64,000 nucleotides of DNA from Chlorokybus atmophyticus (lineage: Eukaryota > Plantae > Mesostigma and Chlorokybus algae). Where the stretch lies: contig RHPI01000810.1 of NCBI GenBank assembly GCA_009103225.1, forward strand, positions 1,043,965-1,107,964. The letters are read 5' to 3'. This document shows, in pieces, positions 521 through 53,866 of the stretch. A program made the translations under genes and the position numbers. Position 1 is the first letter of the stretch. The number at the start of each line of letters is the position of its first letter. Below the pieces are notes generated by a model. It saw only the letters and a program-made list of their open reading frames with translations. It did not search any database and was not told the DNA's origin.

Positions 521-3223
521 ATGCCTCCTTTCGTCCGCCCTCTCACCCTCGCCCTCTCCTTCCTCCTCCTCTTCATCACCATCGCCATCACACCCTTGGC
601 CAATGGTGCGGTCACCAACTTCAATGCCTGTGTATGTTGGCTTGGGGACGTACTGAATGTTCTATTCTACGCTGTCTGGTGCTGGTTTGCCTGCATGTGT
701 ACATGTTGCAGCCATCTAATTACACTTGATTGGAAGTGACCAATCTGACAACCCTGCCTGTTGCTGTGGTTGTTGTGTGGCATGCATGCCTGCCTGCCTG
801 CTTGTGTACGTTTGCGTGCGCGTGTGTGTCCCTCAGCGCAGCCCCACCATCACCATTGGACGACCGCGCCACTGTCTCCGGCCGCGTGTACTGCGACGCA
901 TGCCAGAACGGCCGCTACGACTTCGGCACCGACTACCCGCGCAGCAACACCGAGGAGCACACAGTCACAACAACATCAACATAGGTGTTGATGCGTGCAC
1001 TAACACACAACAACAGGTGCGACTCACCTGCTACGCCAATGATGAATCTATGTATCCGCCGAAAATCATTGAACTAACCGACGCGACAACCTTCACGAGG
1101 CTGAGGGTGTGTTCAACTTCACGCGCCTTGCTGGCACCGAAGAGTCCGCTGCCAGACAGGGTAAAAAAGTGTTGTGTCCAACCAACCATGCATGCATCTA
1201 TGCTTTTGAGTGTACACATACATGCGTGTGTGCATGCGCGCTTCTGTCTGTGTGTGTACGCGAGCGCGTGCATGCGTGGGTACATGCATTGACCTTCTCT
1301 GCACTTGCACACACCACAAACTTTTAACTCTTCACAGGTGCACACTTTGAGGATTGCCTGTTGCAAGTCAACCGTGTGGCTGCGCATTGCTTTGCTCCGG
1401 TGGTTCTCGCCAGCGCAACCTGCAAAAACCCGCGCGACAACCTCGGAGTCCTCCACGCGGGAACAAAGTACAATGCTGATGTGTGCTTCGCTGCAGTTCC
1501 CACACCAAAGAAGTGCGACAAAGACCATAGCCACAGGTCACCACTGGTACCATCACACCTTGGGCTGGCACTGTTCAGAGAGATTTATGCTCATGTGCAT
1601 GTGGGTGTTAACCATGCTTTCCTTTCCAGGTGTGCACGCAGTTTGGTGATCGACTTTTCATCCAAGAATGCCAGCAACGGGCGGACCACCTATGCGATAC
1701 AGAGCATGTCTCTGAGCAACGCGCGCGTGACGGACCTGTACAGCCACCTGACTAGAGCAGTACCCGCCAACGATTACACGCTGACGAGCGGCGTTCAAGT
1801 CATGAATGGTGCGCACCATGTGTATGAAGATACAACCACACATGCACAACTGATATTTGTGCTGCTTGTGGTGTGCGTGCAAGCATGCATGTGTGCGCAT
1901 ATGACATGTTTGCATGCTCACTCTGTGTGAGTATTAGACAGCCTCTACTGGACGGAGGGTTCATATACATATTCAACTGACCCAGCCTCTGAGACCGAGC
2001 GCGTGTTCACTATTCCGGCGACAGACACATCTGGTGGGGCGCAGCCGGCATCCCAAATCTTCAACACACCCGTTGACCCTGCTAGCTCCATCGAGAGCAT
2101 CGTGTTTTATGGCAAGTGTCCATGCACGTAAGAACAACATCCTCCTGTGTTGTGTATTGTATCGATATGTGGGTGCAGATGGCGGGCGCCCGTTCATTCT
2201 GTGATGGAACTCAACAAAAATTGTCAGCACGAACGCCAACTGGCGAGCGTCCCCATCACTGCTTTATAAGGGGGATCCTCCGCCCGAAATTGGCGCCATT
2301 ATTTCTCACACCATTCACGCTCTTTCAATAGACGACTCCGGTGCGTGACTCTCCCACACATGCTTCAGGTGCGGATAAGCATGCATGCTAGCTGACTCGT
2401 TGCCACGCAGTGGTGCCCAACATCGTATATTGGGTGGAGTTCATCCCTTACTACACCGGCGCTGGCAAGCCGGATGAGTACACACTCAAGGCAATCCCGC
2501 TGTGCAATTGCGACCGCGTGTTGCTGCTGGGCCTGCAGGTGGACTCCGGTGAGTGCTTGTGTATGTGTGGTTGTGGGCGTGATGAGGTGGTGACTACTGT
2601 TATCACAGTTCATGGACCACTCTACGTTGGGTACCTGTCTGTTCATGGGAACTCAAATCAAGATGAGTTCATCATGGCAGTGCACAACACTGGCAGGGAT
2701 GGGCTTGAGGCCATTTTGATAAAGCAGCTGGGAACAATCTTCTGCAACTTTCGCATCAACAAATATGCTGGTGAGAGTATGCAGCACACAGGACTGAGCG
2801 CATGCGCACAGCCTCACACGAGCATGTGCATACTCATCTTGTTGACGGGTCTGGTTAATTACGCGTGCGCGCATGCGTGCGTGTGTGTGAGTACACGTGA
2901 AATCTAGCATGACCCCTGACTTATACGCAGATTCTCCAGTCATGTACAGCAGCACGTTGCCATTCTCTCCTTCGGTTTATACATTGGTTGGTAGTACGAA
3001 GGCCATCTACAAGTTGCAGCTGGACTTGTCCAACAACACGAGCCCTGTGCTTGCCAAAGGCTATGCGGTCCACACGAGCCGCATTCCAGATAATGTTCAT
3101 AACAGCGACATACTGTATGGTAAGAGCTGGCTTTCATTGCTTGTAGTCTGTGCGAGGTGCATGTGTGTGAGATGAAGTGTTATCAACTGCGACTCAACAG
3201 GTGCAAATTGTCTTAAGCATTAG
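521..3223 (+). pseudogene. Family copy A: secreted Ole-e-1/SdrD-B-like + YWTD-like propeller gene, disrupted
   Basis: Signal peptide MPPFVRPLTLALSFLLLFITIAITPLAN (521-605), then exons collinear with copy E (GRVYCDACQNGRYD, FNFTRLA, DSLYWTEGS, IVYWVE, LYVGY, YKLQLDLSNN..DILYG). Lesions relative to the paralogues: 1-nt deletions near 840 and 1098, exon-2 donor GT changed to GA at 955, extra base near 1520, and an in-frame deletion in exon 8. Confidence 0.85.
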
Positions 3224-50913: not shown

Positions 50914-53866
50914 TTATGCACGACACTCTACACCTGTTAAAGCACAACTCGTTTATACATTGTCACACAGTCATATCACGCACGGCATGAGGAATCCCGC
51001 CACCAGCACTTACCGTATACTATGTCAATATTATACACATTAGCTGGAATTAGGCCCGTGTACACTGGAACTTTAGCAAGAACGGTGCTCGTGTTGTTGG
51101 ACAAATCCAGCTGCATCTTGTGGATGGCATTCAAACTGTGAGCATAATCTCCGACAGGAGAACGGTACGGCTAGCTGCTATTAAAGACCGGTGGATCTGC
51201 ATACAGCTCATGCTCGATTACACATATGCGCATACTCTCAGACAGATACTCTGACACACACGCTCATTCGCGCGCAGGGACGCTCGCAGACACACACTTA
51301 CTCATACATGCACACATGCATGGATGTATGCTTGCATGCATGCATAAATGCACACGCGCGCATACACATACAATCCACCACACGCATTGATAAGATGATT
51401 GTGCACACGCACATGCACACGCTTACATGCATATGCGTATGCGTACACACCAGTGTACTGATTCAATCAAGTGTGCTGCGCAACAAGCCATAATCTCACC
51501 AGCGTATATATTGATGCGGGGGAAGTTGAAGACGTCGATCGTGCCAAGCAGCTTCGTCACAACGGAGTCAAGGTTGTCCGTGCGGGTGTTGCGTACAGTC
51601 ATGATCAACCCGTCAAGGGCTTCGTACCCAACATACAGCCGTCCGTGAACTATGACACAACGATCGCTAACCACATCATGCGCACAACCACAACCACATA
51701 CACACATAAGCAACACTCACCGGAGTCCACCTGCAAGCCCTGTACAGCATTGAGGCCGTAGCTCGGTTCGCGATTGAACAGCGGGAACGTCTTGATGTTG
51801 GTTAGCCTTGTCTTGCTGGCATTGAGCCACCCGCTTGAGTATGTATGCGTCCGGCTTGCCGGTGAAGTAGTCATAACTCATGAACTCCGCTCAGTACACG
51901 ACGTTGGGCAACACTTCATGGCAACAAGTCATATAGTGCGTGCATGCGCACTTGATGTGCACGTGCGCTCAACCGCACTTGATAGAATTACCCACCGAAT
52001 CGTCTATACCACATTCCACAATGGTGTGACCATCAACGATGCGTCGATCCTGCGGGACACGTGGTGTTGTGAAAAGCAGCGACGGGGAGGCTTTCCAGTT
52101 GGCGTTGGTGCTGACAATCTTTGTCGAGTTCGACCACAAAATGAAGCGGCGCCTGCCATCGGCACACTCCCACATGTTGGTATAACACATTGTCGCACAA
52201 CACAGGAGGATGCTGTGGTATGTCTTGGAGACTTGCCATAAAACACGGTGCTCTTAGTGTCTCTTGCGTCGTCCAGAGGCGTGTTGAAGACTTGAGATGC
52301 CTGCGCCCTGCCGGATGTGTCGGTCGCCGGAATCATGAGCACGTGCTCAGTCTCGGTGTAAAGTTCATTTATATATGTAAATGAACCCTCCGTCCAGTAG
52401 AGGCTGTCTGATACATACCCACAGAATGCGCATGCAAACATGTCAAATGTCCGAGCACCAAGCACCCCGGATATGCACACGCACTGACTTGAACACGTAT
52501 GGCTCTCGCGCACGCATGCACATGCGCGCACGCCACAGTACGCAGCCCAAGTGACAATCAGCTGTGCTTGTTGTTGTGTTTTCAACCAGTGCCCGTGACT
52601 TGGACTTCGCTCGTTATGTAATTGTAGGCGGGCATTGCTTTGGTCAGGTGGGTGTACAGGACCTTTGTGGGCATGTTGCTTAGAGAGACGCTCTTTATCG
52701 TGTAGTTGTTACGCCCCGTGCGGGCATCTTTGCGTGACTGAATGCTGCTCACCAGACTGCGCGCACACTCTGCAGATGCAAGCAAGGTAAATGCACACAT
52801 AGTCGCACAGATTAGCACTAATGGCAAACTCTCAATGGACGGCGTAATAATGTAAGCAATGACCTGTGGCTGTGGTTGTGATGCAATTCTTTGTTGTGGG
52901 GACTTCAGTGAAGCACACGTCGCCATTGTACACGAGTCCCGCATGGAGGTCATAAGCATTAAAGTTTATTGGGTTGTTGCAGGTCGCGCTCCCAAGAAGC
53001 ACTGGAGCGATGCAACGCGGAGACACACGGATGACGCACACCTCGCAGTTCAGATTTTACACGCCTGAGGAGTAAACAACCTGGTTGGTGCGTGCATGCA
53101 CGCACACCGCAGAGAAGGTCAACACATGTACACACGCACAGGCACGCACACACACGCACATGCATGCACATGAAAGCGCCCATGCCCATATATGCACACA
53201 CACGCGCGTGCACGCAAGCAAGCAAGCAAGGACACGACCGCGTACATGCCCCTGCACGCGCATTCACCCACAAGCGCGTATGCGCCCTAACAAGCAGAGT
53301 TGCATTCCCCGCATGGATGGATGGACACATGAACCGTTTACCTTGTCTGTAAGCGGACTCTCTGGTTTCCGCCAGGCGTGTGAAGTTGAACATATCGTTA
53401 GCGTTTGTGAGGGTCGTCACGTCAGTCAGGGTAACGGTTTGCGGGGGCCACTGGTGTCCATCGGTCCCGGTGCACGTGAGGCTCACCTGTGTGGGTGTGT
53501 TGATTCACATGTCAACACAATGATGTTGTGACTATGTATGTGCACCTGGGCGTTGCTGCGTGGGTAGTCGCGACCGGTGATGGTGGCGCAGTCATCCGGT
53601 GGGGGTGGTGGGACTTGAGCTGAGACACACGCACGCACGCACGCACGCACGCACGCACGCAGCGACCACCACCACCACAACAGCAACAAAGGGCTGTCAG
53701 TTGATAACACTTCCAGCCAAGAATAATGTAATGACTGCAACACGTATCCACGCAAGCAAATCAACACTCAAGCAGTGAGATAATTGGTCGCACCATTGGC
53801 CAAGGTTTTGGTGGCAAAGGCAAGGACGAGGAGAAACAGGGTGAGGGGGCTGATGGAAGGAGACAT
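50914..53866 (-). pseudogene. Family copy F, disrupted; closest relative of E
   Basis: ATG at 53866 and all exons present. In-frame stops at 53057-53059 (exon 4), 51891-51893 (exon 8, TGG>TGA) and 51171-51173 (exon 10), plus a 15-codon in-frame deletion in exon 2. Introns and 3' flank align with E (e.g. 41700-41820 vs 50820-50940). Confidence 0.88.

Follow-up and report, generated by a model that had tools for sequence, protein, structure and literature searches.

The stretch examined here is a window of 64,000 nucleotides on contig RHPI01000810.1 of Chlorokybus atmophyticus (scaffold Chrsp103 of the Joint Genome Institute, JGI), in which six-frame motif scans, self-blastn and per-exon nhmmer searches locate six paralogues, named A to F, of a gene for a secreted protein with an N-terminal PAC/Ole e 1-like domain and a C-terminal region that is probably a beta-propeller. 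Each nhmmer exon profile matches exactly these six copies, with E values from 1e-10 to 1e-58, and elsewhere leaves a single trace at E=0.03. Together with the comparison of splice sites, these profiles bear out the six paralogues and the common exon layout of a preliminary description of this DNA, which had also counted five copies as full-length. All 11 exons of the layout are indeed spanned in five of the six (A, C, D, E and F), yet the open frame is retained in copy E alone, and the locus, with five of its copies broken in the assembly, does not hold the expanded set of working paralogues that had been envisaged. The host had been correctly placed in the green lineage, Chlorokybus being an early-branching streptophyte alga rather than a chlorophyte.

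The intact copy and its decayed paralogues

Copy E splices to 549 codons through 10 introns without a stop or any other lesion, and the length, the motifs and the cleavage between ANA and Q (residues 28-31) previously given for its product are reproduced by splicing. The protein has 10 cysteines and seven N-glycosylation sequons. All splice sites are canonical apart from the GC donor of intron 6. The JGI model of this copy (Chlat1/589, P0015; 475 aa) lacks exon 6 as well as 60 nt of exon 3; the GC donor is probably the cause of the skipped exon, and the public protein is probably short of one whole repeat unit. Since exon 6 is symmetric, a genuine skipping of it would keep the frame. Conservation among the copies favours the 549-aa form: the copies that possess exon 6 and the distal donor of exon 3 all conserve them, and the JGI model of copy A uses both, for which reason the 475-aa model was rejected as the main form. 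An alternative last exon of E at 41563 was likewise discarded in favour of the exon at 41811, which A, C, D and F have conserved. Conservation extends upstream of the coding region (Table 1), and a TATA-like box is located about 60-70 nt before the ATG; it reads AGTATAAAA in D and F and AGTATTTACA in E, that is, it is canonical in these two dead copies and altered in the intact one.

The remaining copies are broken to different degrees. Copy A has frameshifts in exons 2, 3, 4 and 5, has lost the exon-2 donor, and carries a TGA in exon 7 (2202-2204) and a 51-nt deletion in exon 8; its JGI model (Chlat1/586, P0001) sidesteps these breaks. Copy B lacks exons 1-5 and has frameshifts and stops in what is left. 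Copy D shows the substitution C49F, frameshifts in exons 4 and 5, a TAG in exon 9 (37086-37084) and the loss of the acceptors of exons 4 and 10, and is represented by a fragmentary JGI model (Chlat1/588, P0017). At least seven lesions have accumulated in copy F, including a 45-nt deletion that takes out VYCDAC, three stops (exons 4, 8 and 10), two frameshifts (exons 7 and 8) and a lost exon-7 acceptor; JGI splits it into models 590 and 591 (P0019 and P0018). The sole lesion of copy C is a frameshift in exon 6 at a (CT)13 tract (13189-13214), its exons, splice sites and cysteines being otherwise intact. The tract may reflect slippage, a fixed pseudogene or an assembly error, and sequencing error is a possible cause of this particular break. 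As the sole cause of the breaks in the cluster it was rejected, because substitution stops, lost AG sites, lost cysteines and in-frame deletions occur together.

With five of its six copies broken, the cluster is, as far as its sequence tells, a birth-and-death family with one intact member. The ratio of nonsynonymous to synonymous substitutions (dN/dS) over all exons lies between 0.36 and 0.71 in pairwise comparisons, which indicates past purifying selection and that the copies were functional for some period before they decayed. The closest relative of E is F (dS 0.30). At the DNA level, the two share only about 70% identity, too little for duplicated haplotypes placed on either side of the assembly gap that separates them. 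This gap lies 3.1 kb upstream of the E ATG and 2.7 kb past the F stop, its flanks are unique, with no mutual overlap and no family sequence, and its intergenic position means that the frame of no copy is affected and that only the E-F distance is uncertain.

Upstream of copy B, where its exons 1-5 would be, and thus between A and B, there is a decayed retroelement of the long terminal repeat type (4100-9300), with a CCHC knuckle-like motif near 5740 and, at 6896-7699, an integrase (Pfam rve, E 7e-5). Direct repeats of 229 nt with 95% identity occupy 8198-8423 and 9068-9296.

Table 1. Positions in the window of the six copies, of the parts of copy E and of the assembly gap
Feature	Position	Strand	Description
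Copy A	521-3222	+	All 11 exons, pseudogene
Copy B	9790-11026	+	3' fragment, exons 6-10
Copy C	14802-11876	-	All exons, one frameshift
Copy D	39536-36547	-	Pseudogene
Copy E	44840-41792	-	Intact, 11 exons, 549 aa
Copy F	53866-50914	-	Pseudogene
Upstream conserved region of E	44841-45060	-	About 200 nt, common to A, C, D, E and F
E exon 1	44840-44753	-	Signal peptide; hydrophobic residues 4-29, hydropathy 1.5-1.9; cleavage between ANA and Q by -3/-1 pattern
E exons 2-4	44526-44408, 44335-44191, 43977-43759	-	Short Pro linker and PAC/Ole e 1-like domain, residues 42-184
E exons 5-7	43657-43466, 43272-43111, 43036-42878	-	First half of probable propeller region
E exons 8-10	42804-42616, 42444-42274, 42075-41890	-	Second half of probable propeller region
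E exons 5-10 together	41890-43657	-	Probable six-bladed beta-propeller, residues 191-543
E exon 11	41811-41792	-	(G)VECRA-stop; carries C547
GC donor, intron 6 of E	43109-43110	-	GC-AG intron 43110-43037; kept in all six copies
Assembly gap	47968-48206		Intergenic, between E and F; no copy interrupted

The N-terminal domain and secretion of the protein

Database searches were made with single exons or with database proteins (the JGI models P0001 and P0015-P0019). The Ole e 1-like character of the N-terminal domain, which had been recognised from its start motif, is supported by the Pfam family PF01190 (Pollen_Ole_e_1), which scores 25 bits on the copy E model P0015 and 32.3 bits on residues 116-272 of P0016, both above the gathering cut-off of 23; single exons gave no Pfam match. 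P0016 (Chlat1/600) is encoded outside the window; with about 54% identity, it is clearly paralogous to the N-domain. The family profile also gives a weak match in the PDB to 6yoa (Lig v 1; E=0.014). An Atlas feature search with exon 4 returned nothing, and AlphaFold2 assigns the domain a predicted local distance difference test score (pLDDT) of about 30-44 in a model that is short of 20 of its residues.

The glycine and cysteines that define the domain in copy E are G45, C49, C52, C74, C124, C135 and C184, with gaps of 3, 2, 21, 49, 10 and 48 residues. This arrangement satisfies the PAC rule Gly(3)C1(2)C2(10-30)C3(20-50)C4(8-20)C5(25-60)C6 (PMC7177597 Table 1), provided that C184 is Cys6. The domain contains eight cysteines in total, the extra pair C146/C174 being conserved in C, E and F, and since a bona fide PAC requires exactly six in the domain (PMC7177597), it is excluded from the bona fide class by those criteria. 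Judged by its residues, the most fitting name for it is a PAC/Ole e 1 variant with eight cysteines.

Copy E shares with the known PAC proteins (PF01190; AtAGP31, FOCL1, Pla l 1 and Lig v 1), whose type 2 has an N-terminal PAC (PMC7177597), the signal peptide, the Gly-x3-Cys-x2-Cys start, a compatible six-Cys spacing and the occurrence of tandem gene copies. It differs from them in having eight cysteines instead of six and in its partner region; the PAC partners are AGP, Pro-rich, extensin, His-rich or W-W domains, whereas in copy E the partner is a beta-rich probable propeller of 350 aa, in which W-x8-W is absent. A propeller is not among the partners listed in the published survey of these wall proteins (PMC7177597). 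In that survey, the earliest bona fide PAC proteins come from bryophytes, Coleochaete contributes a candidate with seven cysteines, and Chlorokybus was not among the species screened (PMC7177597), while the domain described here is from Chlorokybus.

The preliminary description had also read this domain as an SdrD/Cna-B stalk, a reading that finds no support here. There is no match to PF17210 or PF05738, and the GxVWxDxNxNG motif is absent, the sequence being GRVYCD. Copy E shares with the SdrD B and Cna B domains a loose TTTxxxGxFxFxxL stretch, but these occur as tandem repeats, whereas the copy E domain is single and disulfide-rich, as in a PAC/Ole e 1 barrel. PAC/Ole e 1 and SdrD B/Cna B domains probably belong to the same broad transthyretin-like fold class, and a weak transthyretin-like NOMO_3rd trace (E=0.15) is present in the N-domain.

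In all five copies with exon 1, the N-terminus shows the pattern of a signal peptide, with hydrophobic residues 4-29 and an AxA site, as a pattern only. No transmembrane helix follows it in copy E, where the Kyte-Doolittle maximum is 1.55 at residue 124, inside the beta-domain, and no glycosylphosphatidylinositol signal is found at the C-terminus, ILYGVECRA, which is polar and has no hydrophobic tail. Hydropathy and C-terminus thus agree with the secreted, anchorless protein of the earlier description, and the signal peptide, the seven sequons, the ten cysteines and the lack of an anchor together suggest that the protein is released or held in the wall. The adhesin- or receptor-like role that had been attached to the family is something we infer at most.

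The C-terminal region and its relatives

Exons 5 to 10 are all of phase 1-1 and have 52-63 codons each. From their sequence, each of them can be taken to carry three strands (b, c and d) of its own blade and then strand a of the blade that follows, so placed that the intron falls in the a-b turn. The ring would be closed velcro-fashion when the final strand a (EFDILY) joins the strands of exon 5, and C192, at the start of exon 5, may pair with C547 across this closure. Five copies, A, C, D, E and F, retain C547, which exon 11 encodes. A feature search of the ESM Atlas with P0001:164-487 points in the same direction, 28 of its 30 matches being Ldl_recept_b clusters, the best at 0.92 with 170 shared features, although in 4-10% of cases a value of 0.9 is also attained by shuffled proteins. 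In the low-confidence AlphaFold2 model, most of the 13 strands of the propeller part (model residue 142 onward) coincide with strands previously assigned by pattern.

The distribution of variation also fits this fold. Across the copies, identity to E is 71% in the strands and 74% in the a-b and c-d loops, and drops to 39% in the b-c and d-a loops, a contrast reached in 0 of 20,000 segment permutations and accompanied by 6 indel events in the conserved loops versus 30 in the variable ones. When only the loop residues adjacent to strands are considered, the values are 86% for the conserved face and 51% for the variable one. In the same register, dN/dS rises from 0.28-0.31 on the conserved face to 0.43 in the strands and 0.77-0.93 on the variable face. 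In propellers, a conserved bottom face usually goes together with a variable top that binds the ligand (PMC2716378; PMC12667055).

Several observations weigh against a YWTD-like propeller. Neither Pfam, NCBIfam nor the PDB gives a sequence match for the region, with single exons or with P0001, P0015 and their parts; there is no literal YWTD, strand 2 having YWTE, LWWN, YWVE, YVGY and FYSR instead; and hhalign shows no exon-to-exon repeat among exons 5-10. The strand register, on which the loop comparisons depend, was set by hand and not blind, and with this manual register the leave-one-out scoring of blades is significant in two of the six exons (p=0.008 and 0.001; combined p about 8e-4), while one control exon gives p=0.027. 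The AlphaFold2 pLDDT is 32 from the single sequence and 39 from a shallow alignment, both on the 475-aa database model with five units. With that model, the strands fit the assignment, yet the fold searches are not significant, the best Foldseek E value being 0.27, VIA Z at most 5.0 and the Atlas TM by query at most 0.36, even if propellers are frequent among the weak top rows. Finally, the copies compared are pseudogenes whose variable loops align poorly, and dN/dS values near 1 are no proof of positive selection.

On balance, we consider a propeller fold for the C-terminal 350 aa likely and a number of six blades probable, the latter with somewhat less assurance. Of the YWTD-like six-bladed propeller that had been described, the fold is moderately supported by the Atlas neighbours, the exon phases and the loop asymmetry, while the YWTD signature, a profile match and a confident model are lacking, and membership in PF00058 is not established. 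Compared with the YWTD/PF00058 propellers of LDLR, LRP, nidogen and SORL1 and their stand-alone bacterial and fungal relatives, copy E likewise has six units, each with a hydrophobic strand ending in Asp followed by LYW, VYW or LYV, a domain that starts at strand b and ends at strand a, a variable top face, and the nearest language-model clusters. Its units are longer, 52-63 aa against about 43 aa, with one exon per unit, and, unlike the LDLR/LRP-type proteins, it has no YWTD, PF00058 match, EGF module, transmembrane helix or tail.

The exon-6 profile, searched with HMMER against 1.84 billion cluster representatives, has one strong match (E 1.7e-27), P0001, which is a protein of Chlorokybus atmophyticus itself (EukProt EP00898) and maps onto copy A. 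The other searches added the JGI models of D, E and F and the paralogue P0016, and no other organism was represented. Homologues outside Chlorokybus were not found in protein databases, in metagenome, viral and bacterial genome collections or in plasmids (tblastn), in searches that were word-based or used one 57-column profile, so that distant kin can escape them; Rfam gave no match. In the literature, no fusion of Ole e 1 with a propeller is described in the titles or abstracts of the papers that turned up, and we found nothing on Ole e 1/PF01190 or secreted beta-propellers in Chlorokybus and no paper on YWTD-like extracellular propellers in green algae. As had been supposed, no described full-length family was found in databases or literature, and copy E is a new combination of two known kinds of module, restricted in databases to Chlorokybus.

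The rest of the window holds other elements. A CACTA/En-Spm transposase remnant (29539-31127, + strand; Pfam Transposase_21, E 8e-35) lies between C and D, and a short decayed frame at 49600-49900 (+ strand), KLYVGLTSSTAYKRFDKHW, resembles by eye a GIY-YIG endonuclease, an enzyme typical of Penelope-like retroelements. Beyond copy F there is an intron-containing CBS-domain gene (57620-59060, - strand; Pfam CBS) with an Ala/Arg-rich N-terminus, by eye of the plastid CBSX type; divergent from it, a gene that by eye is like the plastid ribosome-associated PSRP1/HPF (59930-61640, + strand); and the 3' part of what looks by eye like a Fe/Mn superoxide dismutase gene (62700-64000, - strand). Long (TC)n tracts are found at 40889-41499 (611 nt, just downstream of E), 24649-24732, 30745-30807 and 47071-47164; two of them contain or adjoin single N letters, and their lengths may be assembly estimates.

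Proposed function and significance

We propose that the product of copy E would belong to the extracellular matrix of Chlorokybus, as a secreted protein of two domains that is N-glycosylated and stabilised by disulfides. Given that plant PAC domains interact with polysaccharides of the wall (PMC7177597) and that the pseudo-pectin of Chlorokybus is anionic and sulphated (PMC10953000), the PAC domain is a likely tether; by analogy with plant PAC binding, the barrel may attach non-covalently to anionic sulphated polysaccharide of the wall or mucilage. The YWTD-like propeller, probably closed by C192-C547, would present its fast-changing top face, made of the b-c and d-a loops, to an extracellular partner, for example, a glycan, a matrix protein or a microbial surface. 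So variable a face speaks for the binding of a copy-specific partner rather than for a fixed active site, and the protein would then serve to bind or cross-link while tethered and be neither an enzyme nor a signalling receptor. The family would have duplicated locally, with its scaffold under purifying selection and its top loops relaxed or diversifying, before most copies decayed. We hold this tethered-binder reading with about even confidence.

The variable faces could instead form a recognition or defence repertoire that binds the surfaces of microbes, viruses or mating partners, turned over by an arms race, and in which slippage at (CT)13 switches copy C. The birth-and-death pattern of the copies, the dN/dS above 1 of the top loops in the pairs E-F (1.16) and E-C (1.44), and the wholly intact remainder of copy C, with all its cysteines and splice sites, are in line with this, but these ratios rest on 79-93 poorly aligned codons of pseudogenes, one intact copy makes a poor repertoire, and the protein has neither a membrane anchor nor a signalling domain. 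We regard such a repertoire as unlikely.

Somewhat less probable still is that the propeller is a secreted enzyme held in the wall by its Ole e 1 module, be it similar to SMP-30, gluconolactonase or strictosidine synthase, phytase-like or acting on glycans. The weak fold rows do include six-bladed enzymes such as sGDH, and in two blades (YWTE and YWVE) strand b is followed by an acidic residue. However, the top-face loops, where the active sites of propellers are located, are the least conserved part of the protein, there is no Pfam match, and the Atlas neighbours are Ldl_recept_b and not SGL or Str_synth. The propellers of SMP-30, gluconolactonase and strictosidine synthase share a metal-ligand pattern E-G-P / N-G / D-G, and by inspection no such conserved pattern is found at the starts of the a strands.

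An equally low probability is given to a beta-rich C-terminal domain other than a propeller, such as tandem sandwiches, or to a cluster that is dying out as a whole, copy E with it, and has no function at present: the lack of a confident model or profile match, the five broken copies out of six, the deviation of the E TATA-like box from that of D and F, and the bacterial Ig-like repeats picked up by the exon-6 profile (E 1e-7 to 1e-3) would suit it, but those Ig-like matches, rejected as relatives, are sums over repeats of a short T-x-x-A-T-D motif, and such proteins reach no significance against E in blastp (E at least 0.03), a propeller agrees both with the Atlas result and with the way in which conserved loops alternate with variable ones, and E is free of lesions over 549 codons and 10 introns, whereas its sister F has at least seven.

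A bolder form of the recognition idea would see in these copies a lineage-specific family that combines the oldest canonically spaced PAC reported so far with a YWTD-derived propeller of one exon per blade, its binding face diversifying and its copies perhaps switchable by slippage. We judge it improbable; if true, streptophytes would have possessed, near their base, a surface-recognition repertoire of an anticipatory kind, and the origin of the PAC wall module would have to be placed well ahead of the bryophytes. At the level of annotation, the locus indicates that the public gene set is incomplete, the JGI model of E dropping an exon flanked by a GC-AG intron and four pseudogenes being annotated as proteins.

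The weight of these results is limited by the single species, the single intact copy, and the conditional nature of fold and function. Within these bounds, the canonical Gly/Cys spacing in Chlorokybus suggests that the PAC wall module predates land plants and served as a mobile tether, and, as the Chlorokybus "pectin" differs fundamentally from plant pectin (PMC10953000), the ancestral ligand of PAC becomes testable.

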